From Amoebophrya sp. A120 (lineage: Eukaryota; Protista; Dinoflagellata): 64,000 nt of DNA. A program made the translations under genes and the position numbers. Of the stretch, positions 17,183 to 62,707 are shown piece by piece. The notes beneath the pieces were generated by a model that was not told the origin of the DNA, did no database searches, and worked only from the letters and a program-made list of their open reading frames with translations. The stretch covers positions 1,364,001 to 1,428,000 of the forward strand of contig CAJINV010000008.1 of the NCBI GenBank assembly GCA_905178155.1, written 5' to 3'. Positions within the stretch are counted from its first letter, which is position 1. The number at the start of each line of letters is the position of its first letter.

Positions 17183-17674
17183 GAATCGTTTTGTACGGCT
17201 GTAGTTGTTGAGGTTCCTAGATGAAGCAAGTTCGTAACATCGCAAATGTCATCGAGCCTGGCAGGGGCAGCCAGGAGATGAGGAACTTCGCGAGGAGCGC
17301 GAGTCGTCATAATATCATCATGAAAAGTACAACCGTGACCGTCTACACATCATCCAGCACCGGAGCATGTTGATGTAGGAGCATCATTTTGCTCATTTGT
17401 CGAGAACCACTTAGAGTTGCGCGCTGGATGCTTCACAACACCCGGCGCTGCGGTGCGTATTCATCGCATCGGAGTTGGACGAACAATTGATGTCCTAGGA
17501 CTGTGATCCACAGAACTAAAGCGCTGCGAAGTAAGTATAGTGTTTTGTTTCGAGTGTGGAACAAGATGACGATGTTGACGATACAACATGGGGTCCTCTC
17601 GTCTAGCTGCGTAGTGCTTCTCGCTGCACTCCGGCTACTGATTTTCGAGTCTGCCGTCTATTTCCAGTTCGCAT
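17183..17674 (+). repeat. Direct repeat copy A: orphan upstream region plus first ~36 codons of the 20186 gene
   Basis: Aligns with 19811-20294 at high identity (roughly 85-90% by eye) with small indels; includes ATG ACG ATG TTG ACG ATA ... TTC CAG TTC GCA. Confidence 0.93.
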
Positions 17675-19304: not shown

Positions 19305-19832
19305 TTGAAAGTTTGCTCCGTAAATGCAAGTGCGGAATGGCGAGGAGAGGAGTTCTCCGCTAAAAAACTGTATGAGCAAGCAAAAGGAGTGGTTGACTCT
19401 GCCGCGGAGAACCTTGCGCCCTTGTTTTTGGCGCGTCTGCGTGAAGCGGCGAGCGATGGCAAATTCGAGACCCGAATAACTGCGGATGAAACGAATATGC
19501 GCTCCTCCGGTTTCAACTTCAAGAACCGGATGCGTGCGGTCGATTGGATGCCGTATTTTGCCTCAGAGGCGGCCTTTTGGTATTTTTGTAGGAATACGAT
19601 GGAGACCGCCTTGTCGAAAGCTGGTTATACTTGTAGTTTCAATCTCGCGAAGGGAGAAACCACGTCCGTGAACGACGGGCCGCAAGAACAGGGCCGGGCC
19701 GTTGTGAAGTCGCGCGGCTCGCGTAATTGCAAACCTGCGCAAAGCGCAAAGGCGCAGCTCATAGGGATCAATGTTGTCACCCAAATTAAATTTTCGGGTT
19801 CGTCAGCTTTGAGTCGTCTTGTACGGCTGTAG
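19305..19832 (+). CDS. Hypothetical ORF or gene remnant inside the repeat-flanked cassette
   Basis: 175-codon protein-like frame starting at TTG; runs into repeat copy B; no recognisable family. Confidence 0.3.
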   Translation: MKVCSVNASAEWRGEEFSAKKLYEQAKGVVDSAAENLAPLFLARLREAASDGKFETRITADETNMRSSGFNFKNRMRAVDWMPYFASEAAFWYFCRNTMETALSKAGYTCSFNLAKGETTSVNDGPQEQGRAVVKSRGSRNCKPAQSAKAQLIGINVVTQIKFSGSSALSRLVRL

Positions 19833-20294
19833 TTGTTGGGGTCGTTCCTAGATGAAGCAAGTTCGTAACATCGCAAATGTCATCGAGCCTGGCAGGGGCA
19901 CCCAGGAGATAAGGAACTTCGCGAGGAGCACGAGTTGTCATAATATCATCATGAAAAGTACCGTCTACTACACATCGACATCATCCAGCACCGGAGCATG
20001 TTGATGTAGGACGAGCATCATTTTGCTCATCTGTCGAGAACCACTTAGAGTTGCATGCTGGATGCTTCGAAACACCCGGCGGCTCTGCGGTGCGTATTCG
20101 CATCGGACGAACAATTGATGCTCTAGGATTGTGATCCACAGAACTAAAGCGCTGCTACAGTATTTTGTGTGGAGTGTTGAACAAGATGACGATGTTGACG
20201 ATACACCATGGGGTCCTCTCGTCTAGCTGCGTAGTGATTCTCGCACTCCCGCTACTGATTTATTTCAAGTCTGCCGTCTATTTCCAGTTCGCAT
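19811..20294 (+). repeat. Direct repeat copy B: upstream region and 5' end of the intact gene
   Basis: Partner of 17183-17674. Confidence 0.93.
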
Positions 20295-23200
20295 TGCAAG
20301 GAACCGTGCTGGCACACGCGCATACAGTGGCAAAATCACCCGGAAACAAGCCTGGCCACCTCGCTCCGCCACCCACCTCGGACGGGCAGGAACCGCGCCT
20401 CTGGATCGACGTCGAGCATGAAGGTGAAGAGGAGGACTACAAACACGCGATCCACATCGAGGACGTCAAGGCGACGAGGCTCAATTCGACAATCACGCTG
20501 CGATGGAACTACTTCGTGCGGAGTGAGGAGTACAATCGAGGATACGCCTGGGGCCAGGTATTGCATCCATCGCCTTACGAAGATCCTAGCGGTTCGAGCT
20601 ACACTTCCAGCGCAATCGCCTTGACAGGGAACACAGCCAACACCGGGTCCTTCAACTGGACTGTGCCTTGCGAAGCCGTCTCGGGCCAGCGGTACCGCTT
20701 CCGGCTGTGCTCTGGCGACCCTCCTCGCAAAAGTAAATTCGCATGTCATGAAAGTAAAGGTGCGATTTTTGTCCTGAACGACACGAGGTCAACAGGCTGT
20801 CCAAACGTTGCCGTGCAACAGAAGAGTGGTCCGCTGGCTCATGCAACTTCTCCTGGTGGCTCCGCGTCACGCAGTAACACACGACCCGCCACACATTCGA
20901 ACCTGAGCAAGTTCCAAAGCCACGAGCAGAATCCCGCCAAGAATCTGAAAGCGAGGCCCATTGAGGTTCTCGGGCCATTAGATGTAACGGATCGTGGTAT
21001 GAAATGGCTCCCACAAGAAGTTGGAGAAGGCCGCGGAATAGACGCAGGGACACTAGCGGCGTCGTCGAATTCGGGAAGCAACAAAACGAGAACGCGAGGC
21101 GATGAAACTACAAATAACGCGCTGACGCATCACGAAGGGACCGAGACGAACTCCCAAGAATGCCTCAAGAACAGCACGAACAACGAGCAGTACCCGAAAT
21201 ACTCACATCGAAAGGAGCAGGATTTGAAACCAGGTGGAAGTTGTAGTCAACCAGGAACGGTCCCCAGCACTTACAGACGCAGTGTGCCGTCATCGCGCCC
21301 TCGAAATTATGCGTCTGATGCAGCTGCTGATCATGAAGATGTTGCGGCAGCTCTTCAGTGGGACGACCACCCAGAGATCATGCGTGTTGTTGGTGATTCC
21401 GCTTGCCAGAAGAACGATGAAGATTGTGTCGACGTCGATATCGGAGTATGCGAAATCGATGAAACGGCGACCAGCACACCAAACCTCCATGCTGAGCCGG
21501 AGTCCGAGGGTCCTTCGTACGTCACACCGGAGCCCAGGCGGCCCGACGAGACGGCGGCAGGAAAAACCGCACAGCCCCTGCGCCGGATGGCTCCACAAGA
21601 TCAGGATCGCGGAATAAAGGACAGCAAGCGCAAGCCTCTGGCCATCGTGGCGTATTGGATTGGCCCGCTGCCAGACTACGTGATGGCGTTTGTCGCAACC
21701 GCCAGGATGGTGAAGGGCGTCGACTTTTTCGTGTTTCACAGTCGCCCGGTGGACGATGATGACCAGGCCGAGATATTCGCCCAGATTCGCGATGCGGCCG
21801 CACCAAACGTGTTTTTTCGCCACTGTCCCCAGGACAAGAGCTGCCTCGCCAAGCGTTTGTGGGAGAACGTGCCCGGCGTGGCGGGCGGCGGTGGTCGTCG
21901 CGGCGAAGTAAAGAGCTTGGAGGCATTTAGTGTCGATGTAGTAGAAGAATCTTTTGCCGATGATAACGCCCCAAAGGGCTATGACCTCAAGGCTCTGTTT
22001 GGGGCGCTGTTCGCGACGGAGTTGGAGCCCTACTCGCACTGGGCATGGACCGATTTGGACGTGTTGTGGTCGCCAAATCTCCTGCAGTTGCTCACTACCG
22101 AAGCGCAGTCAACCTCTCGTCCGCACGCAATGGATCTACTTCAGTCCTACGATGTCGTTACCTGCTTGGACGGAGGACGTTCAGCATTGTACCTCTCCGG
22201 CCAGTTTACGGCTTTCAAAAATATACCCAAATTTGGAAAGCAAAGCGTGCCCGAGCGAAGCGGCGCTCCTGGTCGTACAACGGGGGTCGTGCCCGAGCTG
22301 GAAGATCATAAGCAGTCGCTTTATTTCCTTTCGGGGTGTCTGACAAGAAACGTGGACTTCGTGGCGAACAATGATGGCACCGCCGCAGTCCCGACCCCAA
22401 GGGGTTCCAAGTTCTGTGCCTTGGACTGGATCCTGAGCACGGCACACAGCATGTTCGACGAGAAACATGCGGTTTTTTACGCAGCGGAAAACGCGAACGC
22501 AAAAATCTACTTCGACTTCTCGCTTGGCTTTTCCTCGCAGCGTTGGTCGCAGCTTTTGCACAGAGGGCCGCAATTTGGGCTGTTCTATCCGCTGCCGGAG
22601 GCGGACCGAAGCGCCGGCGACGAACTTGTGTTCGACCGGAAATTTGGGCTTTTCATTGAAGGCAGCAGCTTCGTTTCATCTTCTCTCGCAGCAACTAACA
22701 CAACCGGTGTGGTTAAACAAGAGGGACGGGGGTCGCAGCGATCAAAGCCAGAGAATGAAGTAGGAGGTGACGCCAAACATCAACCGGTGCCGGCTCATCA
22801 TCTTCACACGCCCTTGGTGACGGATTTGGAGCGTATCAACATGCACCTTCACGACCTCCGTAGCAAAACAGACTGCTTTTCGGAACTCGGCGACCGCTGG
22901 AGCTACGTTTGTGTGCCGCAAACGCCCGCGCTGGGAGCGCTTCCCAGCAGCGAGTTCATTTTCGGTGCCGCCTACGAGCTCAGACCAGTGTTCCAGTTGG
23001 CTGTGAGCGGAAGAGACGAAACGCAAGCCGCTGACGAAAATATAAATAGCGGTCGACATAAGGGCGGTGGGCCCCCCCGCGATCGCGTAGACGAGGTCTT
23101 TGTCGCCCGTACTAGAGAAGTTCTGGTGATTCCTTCGGCCTTCGTCCACCGGACGTACGAGTTGTATCCAGAACCGCTACAACAGCAGACATCACCAAAT

Positions 23201-23602
23201 GCCACACCATCAAGAGTCGAGCTGAGTGAAAACAAGGTAGAAAATCAACGTGGTCCTGTCAAAGATAATGGCGCAGCTGCCACTCAATCTGAAGTTCTGT
23301 CAACATCAGAAGAACGTGAACGCCCCACACAAAATATGAAACGCCGCTCTACTCTGGAATTTGCGTTTTTTCATCTCCATCAGCGAAAGGCAAAGTTCAC
23401 TTTTCATGCAGCTAATAATCGCGGTGACCGGCAGCTAGTCAAAGATGACCGGGCACGAAACGACGACGAGCATCGCATCGCGGCTGGGAGCACTGTTTGG
23501 TGTGTTGACCGCAAAGGAGCAGGAAGAGAACTTAAATGCCGCGAAGAATTAGACGCGGGATGGTGTACAGGGTGCCGCGTGGTGGCGTCGCATGATCATT
23601 GA
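20186..23602 (+). CDS. Large membrane-anchored protein with an Ig-like (Kre9/KNH-type) segment and a DUF6625-like putative glycosyltransferase domain
   Basis: Hydrophobic N-terminus; TITLRWN..NTGSFNWTVP..YRFRL; IVAYWIGPLPDY..VDFFVF..YDLKALFGALF..YSHWAWTDLDVLW..YDVV..SGQFTAFKN with a DxD motif. Single long ORF. Confidence 0.7.
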   Translation: MTMLTIHHGVLSSSCVVILALPLLIYFKSAVYFQFALQGTVLAHAHTVAKSPGNKPGHLAPPPTSDGQEPRLWIDVEHEGEEEDYKHAIHIEDVKATRLNSTITLRWNYFVRSEEYNRGYAWGQVLHPSPYEDPSGSSYTSSAIALTGNTANTGSFNWTVPCEAVSGQRYRFRLCSGDPPRKSKFACHESKGAIFVLNDTRSTGCPNVAVQQKSGPLAHATSPGGSASRSNTRPATHSNLSKFQSHEQNPAKNLKARPIEVLGPLDVTDRGMKWLPQEVGEGRGIDAGTLAASSNSGSNKTRTRGDETTNNALTHHEGTETNSQECLKNSTNNEQYPKYSHRKEQDLKPGGSCSQPGTVPSTYRRSVPSSRPRNYASDAAADHEDVAAALQWDDHPEIMRVVGDSACQKNDEDCVDVDIGVCEIDETATSTPNLHAEPESEGPSYVTPEPRRPDETAAGKTAQPLRRMAPQDQDRGIKDSKRKPLAIVAYWIGPLPDYVMAFVATARMVKGVDFFVFHSRPVDDDDQAEIFAQIRDAAAPNVFFRHCPQDKSCLAKRLWENVPGVAGGGGRRGEVKSLEAFSVDVVEESFADDNAPKGYDLKALFGALFATELEPYSHWAWTDLDVLWSPNLLQLLTTEAQSTSRPHAMDLLQSYDVVTCLDGGRSALYLSGQFTAFKNIPKFGKQSVPERSGAPGRTTGVVPELEDHKQSLYFLSGCLTRNVDFVANNDGTAAVPTPRGSKFCALDWILSTAHSMFDEKHAVFYAAENANAKIYFDFSLGFSSQRWSQLLHRGPQFGLFYPLPEADRSAGDELVFDRKFGLFIEGSSFVSSSLAATNTTGVVKQEGRGSQRSKPENEVGGDAKHQPVPAHHLHTPLVTDLERINMHLHDLRSKTDCFSELGDRWSYVCVPQTPALGALPSSEFIFGAAYELRPVFQLAVSGRDETQAADENINSGRHKGGGPPRDRVDEVFVARTREVLVIPSAFVHRTYELYPEPLQQQTSPNATPSRVELSENKVENQRGPVKDNGAAATQSEVLSTSEERERPTQNMKRRSTLEFAFFHLHQRKAKFTFHAANNRGDRQLVKDDRARNDDEHRIAAGSTVWCVDRKGAGRELKCREELDAGWCTGCRVVASHDH

Positions 23603-24095: not shown

Positions 24096-25484
24096 TAATG
24101 TCAATTTCACTTGTTAAATTTTGGTTAATTTCCTAGTCGGCGAGATCGATCGTGGTAAGGCAAACGCCGCCACGAAATGCGCCCCGCTGAATAGCGGGCG
24201 AGAAATCTGCAAATACGCAGAGCAAGACTTGAGGCGCTGGCGCTCGATGAGCGTCCGCGTCTTTGCTCGACCACACCCTCCCGCCCCCGTCTCGCGTGGA
24301 CTGACATGTGCGCAGATTCTTGCTGCCGGACACATGACGCGTGGCAACTTGCCGACGCATGCGCCGCTGCTGCGCGCCGCTGTCTTGGTCGTGCCCGGGT
24401 GCGCCACTGGATGCGGCTGGTGCCCGTCTCACCTCAGCCCCTTGTGCGGTACTGGCTGCGACCCCTCCTGCAGGGAAAGAAATGAATCAACACCCGCTCC
24501 TCGCGGACCTTACTCACACGCGCGCGTAGCATCCGCGGCTCGCGGAGCTCGCGCGCACGTGCGTGCAAAGCGTTGCACGAAATCGATGGCATGGGATGCA
24601 GCCTGCTGTTGCAGGTGCTTGCCCATGATCTGCCCTGCGGGGGGACTCGTGGCCTGTGTCGTCACGCCCCCATGTGCATACTGGCTTGAGGTGTCGCGGA
24701 CGCCGAGCACATAACAAAGGGGCGCCTAGTTGTGGCTAGCGCGCGGCCCTTCTCAACAACTTTATCGAGCCTCGTCGACGCTGGAAATTAATGTCAATTT
24801 CACTTGTTAAATTTTGGTTAATTTCCTAGTCGGCGAGATCGATCGTGGTAAGGCAAACGCCGCCACGAAATGCGCCCCGCTGAATAGCGGGCGAGAAATC
24901 TGCAAATACGCAGAGCAAGACTTGAGGCGCTGGCGCTCGATGAGCGTCCGCGTCTTTGCTCGACCACACCCTCCCGCCCCCGTCTCGCGTGGACTGACAT
25001 GTGCGCAGATTCTTGCTGCCGGACACATGACGCGTGGCAACTTGCCGACGCATGCGCCGCTGCTGCGCGCCGCTGTCTTGGTCGTGCCCGGGTGCGCCAC
25101 TGGATGCGGCTGGTGCCCGTCTCACCTCAGCCCCTTGTGCGGTACTGGCTGCGACCCCTCCTGCAGGGAAAGAAATGAATCAACACCCGCTCCTCGCGGA
25201 CCTTACTCACACGCGCGCGTAGCATCCGCGGCTCGCGGAGCTCGCGCGCACGTGCGTGCAAAGCGTTGCACGAAATCGATGGCATGGGATGCAGCCTGCT
25301 GTTGCAGGTGCTTGCCCATGATCTGCCCTGCGGGGGGACTCGTGGCCTGTGTCGTCACGCCCCCATGTGCATACTGGCTTGAGGTGTCGCGGACGCCGAG
25401 CACATAACAAAGGGGCGCCTAGTTGTGGCTAGCGCGCGGCCCTTCTCAACAACTTTATCGAGCCTCGTCGACGCTGGAAATTAA
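24096..25484. repeat. Apparently exact tandem dimer of a 693-bp GC-rich unit; putative non-autonomous element
   Basis: Units 24096-24788 and 24789-25481 give identical ORF translations in the track; TAA at all three junctions; inverted repeat GGTTAATTTCC (24123) / GGAAATTAACC (25476). Confidence 0.9.
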
Positions 25485-55658: not shown

Positions 55659-58600
55659 TTGTTTGTTCGCAGCAATCGAGGAGCAGGCTGTGGAAGAGCG
55701 CGCGAATTTTCTTCACGACGTCTTGCTGTGCGTATAGAGTGCAGTCTGCTGCTGGCTTGGTGCGTCGAAATGGCATTTCGTCCGATCCTCCCGTTCAGAT
55801 TCGTGACGCTCTGCGCTACCAGCTCCGACTTGGTGATTCGTGTCCTCTGCTTAGCAGTTGATGAGTATCAATCTATCCCCCGTTCATCGGAGATCACGAA
55901 GCACCAGCAAGCCACTGGCGTCGACCCGCTTTCGCAAGTAGCAAGGAAAGAGCAGCAGCTACCGGCAAATACGTTGCTGGAGATTGCGAACCACTGGGAA
56001 AGCCGGAAGGAGCAAGCGCGCAGCAGTAAATCCGACCTTGCGGACTTCGGGTATCGCAATGCCATTCGCCGCGCGCTTACAGACAACGCCACGCTTCTAC
56101 ACACCTTCAAGGAACAAGAGAAATATCGCGCCGTAATCGGCGGAGCGGAGCTCGACAGTGGCTATGCCTATCTTCGCTACATGCGCGACTTGTACATGAT
56201 GCTTAGTGTCCGGGGCCAAGCCGTGACGGATTCGAAGAAGGGCGATGCCTGTTTATGCTACCGTCTCCACGGAAGCAGAGCGCAGGCGCACGCAGCGCCG
56301 GCGCAGCAAGCGGTGGAAAATATGCACCACTCGGAGTCGAGCTCGACAAGCGCAACGGGAGATGACTCCTCGTCGCAGACCAGTGCGGATCTGGCACAGG
56401 GGAACGCAAACGCGCAAGCTCCGGTGTCCATTTCGGAGAAGATTCTCTACCCAAAAATCGAGGGCCTTCACCAAAACGAGGACGAGCATAATTTTCACCG
56501 GATTCGCACCGCAGATTTCGGTCGCGACAGCTGGCTTCGGACGCACCAGCACGTGTTCGCGCGCAATTTTTGTGAAGGCCTGGATTTGTCACTCCTATTT
56601 GCAAATGAGACTGACCATGCGCGGGTTCGTCGGGTGATTTTCGAAGAAAAGGGGCTGGGTTCGCACTATCAGTATCAGCAGTCTAGCACAGGAGGTCACA
56701 GAAAGGGGGGAGCAGAGGCAGCCACGACAGCACAGCGAGATGAGTACAAGTGGAGAGCAGAGCTGGATGCGGGGCGTGGCAACCTCGCGTCCGCAACACC
56801 TGGAGGTTTGGCTGCGTTTGACGATGAAGAGAGTCCCTCAAGCGCCCTTAAAGGAGCTCGCAAGCACGTCAGGGCCGAGACGAACTCGAGTCCGGGCATT
56901 CCCACTGCAAACGAGGTAAAATCAAGCCGGTGCTGCGAATCCACGGATGAAGTACTCGGGCCCTCAGAGCAAGGTGCAGACAGGTGGATACAACATCACA
57001 ACGAGATCGAAGGCACGCGCCGGTACTTCGCACACCTACGAGAGATGGATAGGCACTGCAAAAGTATGTATCGTACAGCATTGCAAAACAAGAAGTATGA
57101 ACTTACATGAATGTGTCGCACTAGTACAAATTGCAATTGGATGAATTGCATACCTACGCAAGTCTTTTCAGAAGGAAAAAGATATACATCGTTTATCTGG
57201 TGCAACTGCAAGTGGTACGGCTATGCTGAATAAGAATACGTAATTAATAGTAGCCAGGTGGCCGCGGCCGTCAAATGAAATGTGTTCCAAGTAGAACGAG
57301 CGCGATACTACAACTTTTGCAGAGGATTGCGGATAAGGTCGGCCAACGAGCCTCACCTCATGGCGGGAATGCTGGTAGCACAGCGACGCAGCCCCCGGCT
57401 GCTGATGCAGCCCCTGCGCTTTCCGGGTCCTCGAAAGCAGGTTCTGGGAATGCGTTTGACTGGGGCGATCCGGTTGGAGCTGTGTCCGCCACGATGCTTG
57501 GTTATGCAAAACAAGTTTTGGAGATGGAAACCCTGTTTGGATCCCTGCAGAACTTCCGCATTGCAGAGATCGGCGTAGGATTTGGTGGGCTATGCCATGC
57601 GCTCTTCGCGCGCTACAAAATGAAGATAGCGAGCTATACCCTCATTGACTTGCCGGAAGCGGAGCAGCTTGCGCTACGGACGTTGCAAAGAAGCTTGGTG
57701 GCTGTGCAGGCGAGTCTTGACAGCGGGAGCACCGAAAATGTCGAACATAATGCGGCAGCGACGACGGGTCCTCGTGATGCAGACAAATTCTCCGGAGGAC
57801 GTGCAGGTGTCTTGTTGGAAATGAAACTGCGTACCTACAATAGCAGGGCAGAGCAAACTCTGCGTCGGAGCCTTCGGCGCGAAAGGAAGAAGGCAAAAGC
57901 TATGAAGAACACCAACGGCAAGATGGACGCTGCAACCGCGCTGCTGCGTGGTATCTATCGTTCGACGTTGCAGTATGTGGCAGGCGACGGAGCGGCTGGG
58001 CAAAAGATCCAGCCTGATGCAAAAGACGTCTTCGTCGAAGAGCACTACAACTCGGATGCCGACGAGTCCACGCCAGACTACGATGATGATCAGGAGGAAA
58101 GATCGAAACGTCACCGACAAGAGTCCTTGATTCCCAATCCAGCGGTGCCGCTTGCTGCCAGCGGACCATGGCTGCAAGAGCTGGTAAACGCGACCAAGAC
58201 GCACAGGCACTTCTCCAAAAGCACCGCCGGCGTATACTTTAGCTACGATCTCTGCATCTCCAATTACGCATTCAACGAGCTTGTCGACGAGCGGGTGGCG
58301 GGGCAGTACGTCCGCGACATTCTGCGAAAATGCAAACGGGTTTTTATCACCTGGGGACTGGCTGCTGCGGACACGGGTGCCGCCTTCGGTGGGCTGCAAA
58401 CCTCGAAGTGGCAAGTAAAGATTTTGAATTCCATGTGGGAATTCAGCAGTGAGGCACCAGAAAAGTGGAAAAAAGGCGTAGAAGACACTGCAAAAGATCA
58501 CTCTGCAAAACGGGAAACCGAAAATCCAGCTTCACTTGACGAGGAGACCGCGACGACGGAAGAACGAACGGACGACGAGAGGCTAAAAATAAACTTCGAG

Positions 58601-59293
58601 ACACTGCAGAGTAAGTTCGACGCACTCCACCACGCGCTCGTACCGTTTTTTATTTCTGTCCACGATGTGCCGGTAATGGGAGGTTCCATTTGGGCGGAGG
58701 CCACCAATATGGGAGTGTCAGGTTTGAAATCGACAAAGTTGAAATAACTTGTAATGCATAAAATCGATACCAGTTGGAAGCCCAATTTTCAAGCGGTGCA
58801 TGACAAATGTCGGCCGCGTCTAAATCCAGTTTGTCATGCTGTTTTGGGACAGAAGGCGTCTTTTGTCATGCTACTGCAGCAGCTCTACCGCAGACCCCAA
58901 ACAGGCTGACAGTCGGCCTCACTACTTGCGGTCCCTGCAAGAGAGGGACTTCATGCCTTGCAATTTATGCATGAGAAATTATTTCAACTTGACGATTTCA
59001 TTCCTGACGCTTCCATAACCAATCGTTTGCTGGTATATATGAATCCGGTCGTATCGGTCCTGGAGCCCGGCAGCATGGTATATAATTGGCAAATATGACT
59101 TGCAAAAGTAACGTACTCGTATAAATGCATTACAAATTTCCTCAGCATGAGAAATGTAATGCAGGTTTGCCTTAAGAACAAGATTTGTAATGCAAGACTT
59201 GCATTTATACGATTACGATACTTTTGCACAGGATAGCAAAATCCGTGGGACTGGGAAACAGGGTTCGGCCGCAGGTATTTCAAATACGTATAA
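55659..59293 (+). CDS. Class I SAM-dependent methyltransferase (putative sugar O-methyltransferase type); 5' end uncertain
   Basis: IAEIGVGFGG, YTLIDLPE, YDLCISNYAFNEL. ORFs 55659 and 57275 and the last coding block join after removing inserts 57050-57328, 58708-59017 and 59094-59235; ends GRRYFKYV*. Confidence 0.75.
57050..57328. mobile_element. Degenerate introner-like element
   Basis: Eroded ends TAGGCACTGCAAAAGT ... ACTTTTGCAGAGGATT resemble the 36616 family; TSD ATGGA/GCGGA; removal of element plus 5 nt joins two different frames (REMDKVGQ). Confidence 0.7.
58708..59017. mobile_element. Introner-like TIR element (TATGG family)
   Basis: TIR TATGG(G/A)AG(T/C)GTCAGG..TGAAATCG; TSD ACCAA; empty site visible in the copy at 61211-61408. 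Confidence 0.94.
59094..59235. mobile_element. Introner-like TIR element (GCAAAAGTATCGTA family, reverse orientation)
   Basis: TSD GCAAA; empty site TGGCAAAATCCG present in copies 2 and 3. Confidence 0.94.
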
Positions 59294-59438
59294 GTTATAT
59301 GTATTAGTATTTCATTCGTTGCAGCATGCTGTCGCGTTTAACAATATAGAAGAAGAAAAGTTTTCCATATCTTCCGCAACAAATATTGATCATCTTTTTT
59401 TTTCCACGGTGGTATACTGCAAAGAGATACAAGAAGGC

Positions 59439-59837
59439 TATACTTTGGTGTGGGGGGGTCCCTTGTCCCTTGACCCTTTTTTTGGCCCGAAAAAGGGACA
59501 AGGGAAAAGGGACCGCTTTGAAGCGACGAAAGCGGCGAAAACGTCCCTTGTCCCTCCTCGCGAAGGGACGAAGGGACAAGCAAAAGGGACACGCTGTAGG
59601 TCCCCGCGGGGCCGGGAGGCGACCCAGGTTCTGACCGGGAAGGGAGAAAGGGACAGGCGAAAGGGACAAAGGGAGGGGGAGACAAATGAGGGGGCGGGCC
59701 ACAGGGGCAGGGGGGAGCGCGGGAGACGGGTCCGAGGGGCAAAGCGAAGGGACCAGGCGACGGGAGAAAGAGAAAGAGAGGAAAAAGGGGACGGCGGAAA
59801 AGAGAAAGAGAGAAAAAAAGAGAAAGAGAGGAAAAAG
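59439..59837. mobile_element. One-ended repeat-array element X
   Basis: Starts TATACTTTGGTGTGGGGGGG; about 8 AGGGAC and 4 GTCCCT motifs, ~25-bp hairpin at ~59457-59514, purine-rich tail; no matching right TIR. Confidence 0.55.
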
Positions 59838-59903
59838 CCGTTTTTTATTTCTGTCCACGATGTGCCGGTAATGGGAGGTTCCATTTGGGCGGAGGCCACC
59901 AAT

Positions 59904-60153
59904 TATCAAGTGCAAAAATGTCTGGGTCTGGAAGATTGGAACTTGTGATGCGCATTTCAGAACACACAAAAATCTCTGATGCATAGGCAACAAGGCTGCT
60001 CACTTTCTGTCACCAAAATGGCGGATTTGTCATGCGGATTCGGCATTGCGGAGGCTCCTCGAAACGTGTGATGCTAGAGCTTCCATGCCAGACCTTCTGT
60101 GTCATGCAGAAACAGCATGACTCTTCCAGACCCAGACATTTTTACATTTGATA
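59904..60153. mobile_element. Introner-like TIR element (GGGTCTGG family)
   Basis: TIR TATCAA(G/A)TG(C/T)AAAAATGTCTGGGTCTGGAAGA; TSD CCAAT. Confidence 0.94.
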
Positions 60154-60201
60154 CCAATCGTTTGCTGGTATATGTGAATCCGGTCGTGTCGGTCCTGGAG
60201 C

Positions 60202-60310
60202 TATCCAGGAAAAAACACCCATCCCCATCCATTTTTTGCATGACAAATAGTGGACTTTATACATGTTTTGCACGACAAATTGGATGGGGATGGGTGTTTT
60301 TTCCTGGATA
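60202..60310. mobile_element. 109-bp introner-like TIR element
   Basis: ~30-bp perfect TIR TATCCAGGAAAAAACACCCATCCCCATCCA; TSD GGAGC; empty site in copies 1 and 3. Confidence 0.94.
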
Positions 60311-60531
60311 GGAGCCCGGCAGCATGGTCTATAATTGGCAAAATCCGTGGGACTGGGAAACTGGATTCGGCCGAAGGTATTTCAAATAGTGTAAGTTAGT
60401 AAACGCGACAGGTACACAATAAATAAAAAATTTCTCAAGATTGTGGCATATGGAATCTGCATCGAAATCTTCCCGAACAAATATTCATAATTTTTTTTTT
60501 TCACGCGGTGGTATTCCCGAATGTCATAGGG

Positions 60532-61210
60532 TATACCTGGGTGTGAGGGGGAAAAAAACGGGTTAATCCGGGTTTTGTCGAAATCGCGGAATTTTTTGTC
60601 GATTAGCCCGGTTTTTGTCGAAGCCGCGAAGTAACCGCGGTTATTGTCGAAATTTTTGTCGAAATCCGGGTTAAATAACCGCGGGCGACACTGTCTGTCG
60701 ATTTTCTTGTCGAAATTTTTGTCGAAATCCGGGGTTTTCTAACTTTAACCGCCGCCGTCGGCGGGATCCGCGGTGGTCGGGTCCGCGGTTTCGCCGGGTT
60801 GGTCGATTTTGTCGAAATCCGGGTTAATCCCGGTTTCGACACAGATTTCGACAAAACCGGGAATAACCTGGATTTCGACAAAATTGAGAACAACCCGGAT
60901 TTCGACAAAATCGCGGATACCCCGGATTTCGACAAAATTCCGTTTGCGGGAAGGTGGCGGCCGCTGTCCTCGGGCGGGTGACCCCGTTCCCTTGTGCGGG
61001 GGCTCCCTTGGTTTCCTTCGTCTTTTTTTCGCAAAGAAAGTTTGCCTCTGGCGAGAATCGACCTCTACGGTAGTTTCTTTCCGAAATAAAAGGCGCGGAT
61101 CGACGACGGAGTTCGCGCTCCCCGGAATCCGACCGGGTCACCCGGCCCTCCCCTTTGCCTCTTTTTCAGGGACCGCGCCAGTGCGGGTGCGGCGGGGCTG
61201 CGTCTGGGTA
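60532..61210. mobile_element. One-ended repeat-array element Y
   Basis: Starts TATACCTGGGTGTGAGGGGG (like X); about 8 TTGTCGA followed by 4 TCGACAA motifs; GC-rich remainder; no right TIR. Confidence 0.55.
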
Positions 61211-61408
61211 TTATTTATTTCTGTCCACGATGTGCCGGTAATGGGAGGTTCCATTTGGGCCGAGGCCACCAATCGTTTGCTGGTATATATGAATCCTGTC
61301 GTATCTGTCCTGGAGCCCGGCAGCATGGTGTATAATTGGCAAAATCCGTGGGACTGGGAAACAGGGTTCGGCCGAAGGTATTTCAAATTGTATAAGTATT
61401 ATACCTGA
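61211..61408 (+). repeat. Copy 3 of the last coding block, free of introners
   Basis: FISVHDVPVMGGSIWAEATNRLLVYMNPVVSVLEPGSMVYNWQNPWDWETGFGRRYFK uninterrupted, followed by a diverged homologous 3' UTR. Confidence 0.93.
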
Positions 61409-62707
61409 TTCATCCGTTGCCGCATGCTGTCGCGTTCGAACACTAAATCAAAAATTTTTCAAGATTGCGGTGCATGGCATCTGCGTCGAATATCTTCCCG
61501 AACAAATTTTCATGATCTTCTTTGTTACGCAGTGGCACGCTCGAGAGTGATACGAAAAACGTGCAGCTTGTACAACAGTCACGCAAAATCGTTTTTTTTG
61601 CATTAAAGAAATCATTATTTAAGCCGAAACCAGCTCGCGTAGAGGCGAATATGCATGATGAAAAATTCATACAGAAGATGAGTCTAATAGACCGCTGCAG
61701 CTCGCGTGAACACTAAACGTACAAATGTACAAAGTTACTGCAGGAAAAAAAAAGATAATGAAGGATCCGCGAGAGCACTGATATCGTAAGAGTTGTACTT
61801 AACTTGTTCATCGAGCTAATTACGAATCTTATCAACACCAGGTTGAGTTTGTGGTATTCTGCGAGACAGCGCGCATATGGTGGGCAAGTGCGATATCTGG
61901 CTTGGAAGTCGAAGCTGGACGGTAGGCCGCTGTTGGGATGGTTATATTAACGAGCAGTGTGATGTGCCTCCTATCCTCTTCCTCATCCGATTGTAGATAT
62001 AGTTTTCAATGTGTTATCACGTGTCGCGGCTACGGTTGCGATCTCTGCGCTGCCAGGGACCAGGGTATGTCACAGTCACTGCGGCGGGTGTGTTTCGTTG
62101 TCTCTCTCTGTCATCATCGACGACATTCTACTTCTTGTTTTCGTCACGAAGCCATGGCATTTAGAGGGCCCGGTAGCCCTGCGTGTCTGGTGCTGCTGCT
62201 GCAGGCGAATTTCAATTTCTTATACGCCTTGTCTCCATTCGAAGCGAAAAAAAAATTGAAAAGGGTACTTAGCGTGTCGACAACCACACGACTTCTACTG
62301 CTTCATGTTCATCATCATCATCATGTGTGATGTTGATTCAGATCCATGACTGCTTCGTATTGCCGGCGATGTTCGGAAACAATTTTTTGTGGTTCAACGA
62401 AAATGTTGACAGCGTCTCGTTCCTGGTTCTTGTCCTCACAGTCGCGTTTTTATTTGGTACGTGAGTACTACCCGATCTTGATGACCCTGGAAGTGGAGAA
62501 ACGAAAATTATCAAACACAATCAAGAAGCAGCGACATACAGTAGGTTCGCTTCTTCGAGATTTTCTGTTGTCTGCTGAAAGGTAAACATCCGGGCTCTAC
62601 CAAGACAAATTTGTTTTGTCCACCTCCTCCGCCGCTGCATTGGTCGTCGTCGATTGCTTTTCTTATTTTGCGTGTTTCCTTAAAAGTCGTGAATAATTGA
62701 AAAGAAG

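Follow-up and report, generated by a model that had tools for sequence, protein, structure and literature searches.

How can copies of an exon segment that lie silent inside an intron look as though they were still selected for the protein that they encode? The question is raised by a locus of Amoebophrya sp. A120, in a window of 64,000 nucleotides (nt) of its 115.5-Mb assembly (G000:C8:1364001-1428000; all positions given without a contig refer to this window). Here a segment of a gene for a putative sugar O-methyltransferase occurs as three direct copies, c1, c2 and c3, which begin at 58643, 59838 and ~61211, are each followed by related non-coding sequence (i1, i2 and i3), and are separated by two further elements, X and Y. 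The copies had been recognized in a preliminary description of the sequence, and comparison of the sequences confirmed them; no further copy of the segment was found elsewhere in the 115.5-Mb genome. The preliminary description took the repeated unit to be a gene end, about 58 codons with a stop codon and a 3' untranslated region (UTR), and proposed either that all three copies are used as alternative ends or that diverged functional alleles were stacked by circles that replace the end of the gene. The analysis described here assigns the copies a different anatomy, in which only c1 is seen to be spliced into the mature RNA, and tentatively favors a reading in which functional alleles, already diverged from one another, were stacked by unequal exchange associated with transposons.

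Gene structure at the triplicated segment

The exon at 57332-58702 encodes, with 100% identity, residues 427-883 of CAD7957587.1, an unnamed protein of 955 aa from Amoebophrya sp. A120. This protein contains a match to TIGR04371, the core of NanM-like putative sugar O-methyltransferases, and has orthologues in strain A25 (CAD7955912.1) and in AT5.2 (g7244.t1). The single exon served as the query for database searches; for codon counts, exon pieces were put together in local scripts only. Comparison of the orthologues revealed that the stretch of protein encoded by the triplicated segment is among the best conserved.

Four sequencing runs were placed on positions 57300-61700, and the RNA evidence consists of assembled contigs from one sample, in which rare isoforms are dropped. 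Run X3 is RNA by content, because its contig is spliced. This 3.6-kb contig aligned to 57331-58702, to 59018-59088 and then up to 59276; it carries c1-specific bases throughout, skips 58703-59017, departs from the window sequence at 59276 and resumes with the letters of 61844-61873. The splice recorded in this way joins a donor (...CGCAG/GTATTT) at 59274/59275 to an acceptor (...CACCAG/GTTGAG) at 61841/61842. Translation of the downstream exon, (R)LSLWY...GWLY followed by a stop codon, gives the exact C-terminus of CAD7957587.1, which ends in ...GFGRR followed by LSLWY...GWLY. Because c1 is spliced from 59274 to 61842, a single GT-AG intron of 2,567 nt contains X, c2, Y and c3, which are removed with it (Table 1).

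Each repeat comprises the final 170 nt of an internal exon, the 5' splice site of that exon (AG/GTATTTCAAAT) and approximately 160-180 nt of intron. What had been described as RYFK, a stop codon and a UTR is the start of the intron and not a gene end; the coding part ends at the 5' splice site, and the gene itself ends at 61950. The upstream exon is continuous with c1 only, and the RNA contig joins only c1 to the upstream and last exons, which is at odds with the use of all three copies as alternative ends. Nor do the copies replace the 3' end of the gene, as c1 is spliced to a downstream exon while c2 and c3 reside in the intron that is removed.

Depth in the RNA contigs was 21 on the exons and 0 from 59652 to 61415, a range that includes all of c3, save for a value of 0.44 in the bin at 60240-60386 that holds the last coding piece of c2. 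No c2- or c3-specific contigs were found in run X3, and four RNA-like runs contained only 0.40-0.44 of the sampled words, a share that fits the exons plus i1 and X and nothing more. Two raw RNA runs (X9 and X10; 2026) left the gene uncovered and are hence uninformative.

Table 1. Anatomy of the methyltransferase locus, with positions counted from the first letter of the window.
Feature	Position	Strand	Details and evidence
Large exon body of the methyltransferase gene	57332-58702	+	RNA contig without mismatch on 57331-58702; continues unbroken into copy 1
c1, expressed	58643-59274	+	Coding pieces 58643-58702, 59018-59088 and 59236-59274; two introners
c1 introner	58708-59017	–	Target repeat ACCAA; 310 nt; removed from RNA
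c1 introner	59094-59235	–	Target repeat GCAAA
GT-AG intron holding i1, X, c2, i2, Y, c3 and i3	59275-61841	+	RNA contig jump, mapped donor and acceptor, annotated protein
i1, intron start of c1	59275-59438	+	Sequence comparison of copies
X, inverted right-end fragment of a terminal inverted repeat (TIR) transposon	59439-59837	+	Terminus GGC/TATACTTTGG... adjoins i1; truncated inner side adjoins c2
c2, silent	59838-60376	+	Coding pieces 59838-59903, 60154-60201 and 60316-60376; two introners
c2 introner	59904-60153	–	Target repeat CCAAT
c2 introner	60202-60310	–	Target repeat GGAGC
i2, intron start of c2	60377-60531	+	Sequence comparison of copies
Y, inverted right-end fragment (679 nt) of a 2.8-3.1-kb TIR transposon	60532-61210	+	Terminus GGG/TATACCTGGG... 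adjoins i2; truncated inner side adjoins c3
c3, silent, uninterrupted, introner-free	61211-61377	+	RNA contig depth 0; DNA contig depth 45
i3 and unduplicated remainder of the intron	61378-61841	+	Empty X/Y insertion site near 61545-61556; acceptor AG 61840-61841
Last coding exon, 35 codons and TAA at 61948-61950	61842-61950	+	RNA contig, translation, annotated protein

RNA contigs of depth 4-7 (59257-59642) cross the c1 donor and run through i1 into X, ending near 59642, and low coverage (~2-4) returns just upstream of the acceptor, at 61482-61639. The RNA at 59257-59642 could be retained-intron RNA or prematurely ended transcripts encoding ...GFGRRYFKYV and a stop.

The same gene has a further non-GT-AG intron at 57047-57330, bordered by the direct repeat GGATA and absent from both the RNA contig and the annotated protein. 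In AT5.2, the model of the orthologue g7244.t1 has ...GFGRR, where the repeated exon segment ends, as its very last residues and misses the last exon, perhaps because its intron is also complex.

Coding constraint and intron divergence in the three copies

In every copy, the coding part ends in ...CG(C/A)AG/GT with an intact 5' splice site (59274/59275 in c1, 60376/60377 in c2 and 61377/61378 in c3), and the first 11 intron nt after the donor are identical in i1, i2 and i3. When the inserts are removed, nine codons differ among codons 2-55 (diagnostic bases lie at codons 17, 27, 29, 31, 32, 40, 51, 52 and 55), with at least nine synonymous changes, a single conservative non-synonymous change (Met to Val, in c2) and no indels. 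This is the only non-synonymous change in c2, and c3 has none except for a Phe/Leu difference next to its joint. Given the observed mix of transitions and transversions, the probability of at least 9/10 synonymous changes under neutrality is 1e-5, in agreement with the excess of synonymous changes noted in the preliminary description, and the changes private to c2 and c3 give P = 6e-5 for the same bias. Estimates by the Nei-Gojobori method (NG86) were 0.15-0.22 for synonymous divergence (dS) and 0-0.008 for non-synonymous divergence (dN), with dN/dS of ~0-0.05; at those values of dS, 19-27 non-synonymous differences would be expected per pair of copies without constraint, and 0-1 were observed. 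By this comparison of codons, the silent copies c2 and c3 still look selected for protein coding.

The non-coding part of the unit differs between copies at 24-33% of ungapped columns and contains many indels, and here the heavy divergence described earlier stands, though the sequence concerned is intron rather than UTR. No mosaic of shared variants, as a sign of gene conversion, was found among c1, c2 and c3.

That a dead duplicate would not look like this, as had been argued, agrees with a dN/dS of ~0-0.05, by which dead in-situ duplicates are ruled out. CpG hypermutability was considered as a source of the third-position changes and rejected, since only ~10/24 CpG positions are silent and cannot yield 9/10. 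Long open reading frames (ORFs) that run through X into c2 and through Y into c3 were judged to be an effect of stop-poor iterated motifs, as the other frames and the other strand contain long ORFs as well and no domains were found.

The introners of the copies, which were said to differ from one copy to the next, do so in c1 and c2, while c3 carries none. Introner elements of Amoebophrya are non-canonical introns that resemble miniature inverted-repeat transposable elements (PMC7789003). The four at this locus have TAT...ATA inverted ends and 5-bp direct repeats, and precise removal from RNA was seen in the RNA contig for the element at 58708-59017. Two different introner families lie 1 nt apart at a homologous site, at 58703-58710 in c1 (ACCAA) and at 59899-59906 in c2 (CCAAT), and the corresponding site in c3 is empty.

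X and Y as halves of TIR transposons

The elements between the copies, formerly regarded as unknown repeat arrays, are truncated ends of TIR transposons, of which full copies exist on three other contigs. X is ~91-92% identical (Kimura two-parameter distance, K2P, 0.079) to one end of a 5-kb element at G000 C15:367224-372285, and Y matches, over its full length, one end of the elements located at C3:7506333-7509107 and C13:229222-232362 (K2P 0.038-0.043); a shared 19-mer occurs at just two further loci of the genome, in each as two inverted copies separated by 2.8-3.1 kb. In the full elements, the TIRs are 120 nt long and 94-100% complementary, the interiors consist of iterated motifs in both orientations, and the target repeats of 7-8 bp (TGGTCGC, TTTTCCC, TTGCGAC) are set off by CAA and CCC. 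No recombinase or transposase was recognizable among the ORFs of X, Y or their full relatives (no Pfam domain), and the ORFs of X, Y and the C15 element are products of the iterated motifs. Apart from the target repeats, neither gene pieces nor long flanking duplications were found at the three full copies on C3, C13 and C15. Duplicated gene ends, which were expected to abut X/Y-like elements at other loci, are lacking there, an outcome that the preliminary description had itself listed as contrary to its proposal.

At the locus itself, X and Y each meet the intron with an intact terminus, at an insertion site of the ordinary kind, and each is fused by its broken interior to the start of the next copy. 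Measured against the empty site in i3, the two insertions lie 5 nt from each other; the exon-side joints are separated by 3-6 nt, near the equivalent of 58643. Both copy joints hold one transposon half and the third, unjoined insertion site is empty, from which it appears that the formation of the joints was tied to the transposons. The truncated end of Y (61199-61210) falls on CTGGGTAT, which agrees with the true terminus CCAGGTATA at 7/9 positions, and may be a pseudo-end cut by transposase; no resemblance to the terminus was found at the truncated end of X.

Other possibilities were considered and rejected. The Y half is not a mini-element inserted with its own target duplication, as the flanking 8-mers differ, and a macrotransposon, or transduction of a copy and its intron start, is precluded by element termini that point the wrong way. 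A 670-nt direct repeat that flanks the C13 element was likewise set aside, as it does not adjoin the element.

At C13:227341-232362 and C15:365736-372285, a AACGAACG-motif TIR element shares its target with a neighboring element of Y or X type. The target repeat of 7-8 bp occurs there in triplicate (TTTTCCC; TTTGCGAC), and the flanks are paralogous between the two contigs. The sharing of a target by elements of different motif types indicates that different families of this group hit the same spot.

Relative ages of copies and joints

The transposon halves provide a clock for the joints, on the premises that the residence of a transposon at a site is no longer than its separation from its nearest relative, and that a duplication jointed on the broken interior of a transposon is not older than the insertion. 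Y and its two full relatives differ by pairwise K2P of 0.037-0.043, and their private changes (13, 11 and 13) are evenly spread, giving a clean star of ~0.02 per lineage without conversion patches. Y is ~2% from the family ancestor, and the copies that it joins differ by 0.22-0.24 at neutral sites (c2 versus c3: dS 0.22, seven silent differences, and 24% in the intron part). Had the event at Y made c3 from c2, a divergence of no more than ~0.04 would be allowed; the observed value is far larger, and the joints therefore appear to be younger than the copies. If c2 and c3 had split no earlier than the insertion of Y, the probability of the data would be 1.3e-3 for silent sites and 1e-14 for the intron part. 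The same reasoning extends to X, which is 0.079 from its relative, as compared with 0.15-0.33 between c1 and c2, and the silent copies are 4-6x as diverged as the transposon halves at their joints.

Under equal rates, this comparison rules out duplicates that were born identical at the X or Y event, and under one clock it suggests that the copies diverged before they were joined. Because the genome holds no other copy, they would have diverged in different genomes, as alleles or as sister-lineage versions of a working exon. After joining (at most 0.02-0.04), only ~2-5 non-synonymous changes would be expected in each silent copy, and c2 has one.

Possible origin by stacking of diverged alleles

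Among the proposed origins, the one that best fits is the stacking of diverged functional alleles, which had been one branch of the preliminary proposal; confidence in it is limited, and the fit comes from the constraint on silent copies and from copies that are more diverged than the transposon halves joining them. A transposon sitting harmlessly in the intron would break or be cut, these elements being rich in long inverted repeats, and an aberrant event would ensue, either alternative or one-ended transposition or breakage in the foldback-rich element followed by end joining or template switching. The chromosome broken inside the transposon would be joined to a homologue that was itself broken where the segment begins, in a T-rich tract, and the result would be a tandem duplication with its two copies from two parents. 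The partner would have been a non-identical homologue, that is, another allele or lineage in a sexual or hybrid stage, rather than a sister chromatid, so that each event would have stacked an allele already diverged under purifying selection and equipped with its own introners. Copies c2 and c3 would be recent silent passengers, their decay still to come. Origin as diverged working alleles would account for the near-restriction of changes to synonymous sites, for the intact donors and for the introner differences, with no need for present use of the copies.

Several points weigh against allele stacking. A silent-site divergence of 15-20% between alleles is very high for one species. Two independent exon breaks within 3-6 nt and the reuse of both breakpoints by two element families are unexplained, and the joints are without clear target duplication or microhomology. 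The clock assumes equal neutral rates and no ectopic conversion of transposon halves, and the RNA evidence is that of assembled contigs from one sample, which drop rare isoforms, the raw RNA runs having no coverage here. Finally, no relatives of the locus were found in two metagenome scans, and the copies were compared within the single A120 assembly.

Next to nothing is known about the sexual cycle or the population structure of the parasite Amoebophrya. If allele stacking is correct, the locus records two transposon-mediated unequal exchanges between diverged chromosomes, which would be indirect evidence for outcrossing or hybridization between well-separated Amoebophrya lineages and would mean that transposons can build exon duplicates from different alleles and not from one. 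More generally, a signal of purifying selection on a silent duplicate need not imply its use.

Alternative explanations

The strongest competitor, which is nonetheless unlikely, holds that the copies are old in-situ tandem duplicates that now serve, or recently served, as alternative exon ends through stage-specific, rare or non-canonical splicing, each of them translated and selected, and that the transposon halves landed later on hot-spot joints. It accounts for the constraint on all three copies and for the intact donors, and the 170-nt unit, not being a multiple of 3, resembles a mutually exclusive exon. An AG stands exactly at the X/c2 border and a GT lies 3 nt ahead of the start of the c1 repeat, in phase; many introns of this genome are removed without GT-AG (PMC7789003), and different elements do hit the same spots. 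However, there are no c2- or c3-specific RNA contigs, the RNA contig showing c1 bases throughout, and c3 lacks an acceptor-like site, while c2 has only an AG with a purine-rich tract upstream. Use of the putative donor would also lose a Val that does not vary in the orthologues of A25 and AT5.2. As the peptides of the copies are identical save for one Met/Val difference, there would be nothing for selection to act upon among the alternatives.

Rather less probable is that unexpressed in-situ duplicates were kept clean by gene conversion, which in a very large population would expose their damage to selection via c1, and that X and Y look young through conversion by members of their families. 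No second genome is required by this account, and c1 and c2 agree at each of their first 66 nt but show six differences over the following 104 nt (P ~0.05). Yet the silent-site divergence of the exon, 0.15-0.22, is near that of the intron part, without homogenization, and the private variants of the copies are interleaved rather than arranged in conversion tracts. The differences in Y are evenly spread and star-like, without patches, and the selection coefficient, being the conversion rate multiplied by s, would be tiny.

A further reading, and an improbable one, is that Amoebophrya possesses a recurrent route, guided by homology or by hot spots, in which half transposons bring in or trap foreign alleles of the adjoining part of the gene, to be stacked as cassettes at the same two breakpoints. 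If it were true, working exon segments could be swapped between lineages, in a eukaryotic, transposon-driven analogue of cassette or att-site capture.

There is little to recommend a dedicated system in which circles made of an exon end, an intron start and a transposon piece integrate by site-specific or homologous recombination and swap the segment, as do bacterial att islands. Such a system would yield stacked, diverged and constrained copies with nearly identical boundaries in two events, and transposition with reversed ends can release the segment between transposons as a circle (PMC3744419). Against this, X, Y and their full relatives contain no recombinase or other recognizable gene, and the full elements are bordered by ordinary target repeats of 7-8 bp and lack gene pieces. 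The segment is internal to the gene and its peptide is unchanged, leaving no gain from replacement, and no circle or pop-out joints occur among the DNA joints listed. The dedicated gene-end replacement system of the preliminary description is left without an enzyme, a gene end or a parallel in the full elements.

Least credible is an assembly artefact in which long-read scaffolding concatenated alleles of a mixed culture: the assembly does order Illumina scaffolds on a Nanopore draft (PMC7789003), and the short contigs are too short for the whole 2.9-kb structure, but contigs cross the i1/X and X/c2 borders and reach 26 nt into Y across i2/Y, the RNA contig connects c1 both to the upstream exon and to the last one, and copy-specific DNA contigs have full depth (i1-X 42.4, X-c2 44.8, i2-Y 32.9 and c3 45.1; unique flanks 42.6 and 40.8) rather than fractions of it. 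Because this is single-copy depth (33-45 against 41-43 in the flanks), each copy is present once per genome, and the mixture of haplotypes that had been raised as a possible refutation was not borne out.

Other duplications in the window

Two further duplications were observed in the window. A perfect 693-bp tandem duplication occupies 24096-25481, in which 24096-24788 and 24789-25481 are 100% identical; it is either very recent or an effect of assembly. A 507-nt direct duplicate, at 17183-17674 and 19811-20294, has 86.6% identity, with its copies 2.6 kb apart. The copy at 19811-20294 contains the start of an ORF of 1145 aa (20165-23602), and that at 17183-17674 contains an ORF of 102 aa with the same N-terminus, so that the 5' end of a gene is duplicated upstream of the long ORF, with further ORFs between.

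Comparison with known systems

The small elements in c1 and c2 resemble the introners of Amoebophrya in their inverted ends and 5-bp repeats (PMC7789003), whereas X and Y do not: their families are 2.8-5 kb in length when complete, with iterated motifs, 120-nt TIRs and target repeats of 7-8 bp, and at this locus X and Y are present only as halves and are removed within a GT-AG intron rather than alone.

As with bacterial att islands in transfer RNA genes, which bring a copy of the 3' end of their target gene, successive arrivals would leave a tandem series of displaced and diverged versions of a gene segment behind the one that is used. The differences are the absence of an integrase, the position of the segment away from the gene end, the lack of an identical core delimited by element ends, and the setting in a eukaryotic intron. 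Clusters of mutually exclusive exons such as that of Dscam offer another likeness, as the segments are in tandem, their length is not a multiple of 3, the 5' splice site and open frame are kept and purifying selection is apparent. Unlike exons of the Dscam type, the copies start inside an exon, have no 3' splice site of their own and encode the same peptide, and c2 and c3 are absent from the RNA contigs of the one sample.

A comparison can also be made with maize Ac/Ds, in which alternative transposition, involving reversed ends or sister chromatids, makes tandem direct duplications whose junction contains Ac or a fractured Ac (PMC3744419; PMC4270019). Here, too, a fractured cut-and-paste TIR element lies exactly at the joint of a tandem duplication, beside the original insertion site, the event is local, and the duplicated gene piece is harmless, being intronic. 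The copies made by Ac/Ds are born identical from sister chromatids, while those described here are far older than the element at their junction (0.15-0.33, versus 0.04 for Y and 0.08 for X). The maize junction is a true terminus with an 8-bp target duplication, whereas the exon-side joint here is a broken interior without matching 8-mers, and, unlike in maize, two families made two joints at nearly the same two points. On the best available reading, the locus would be a transposon-mediated tandem duplication with a new twist, in that its copies are older and diverged and its breakpoints were reused.

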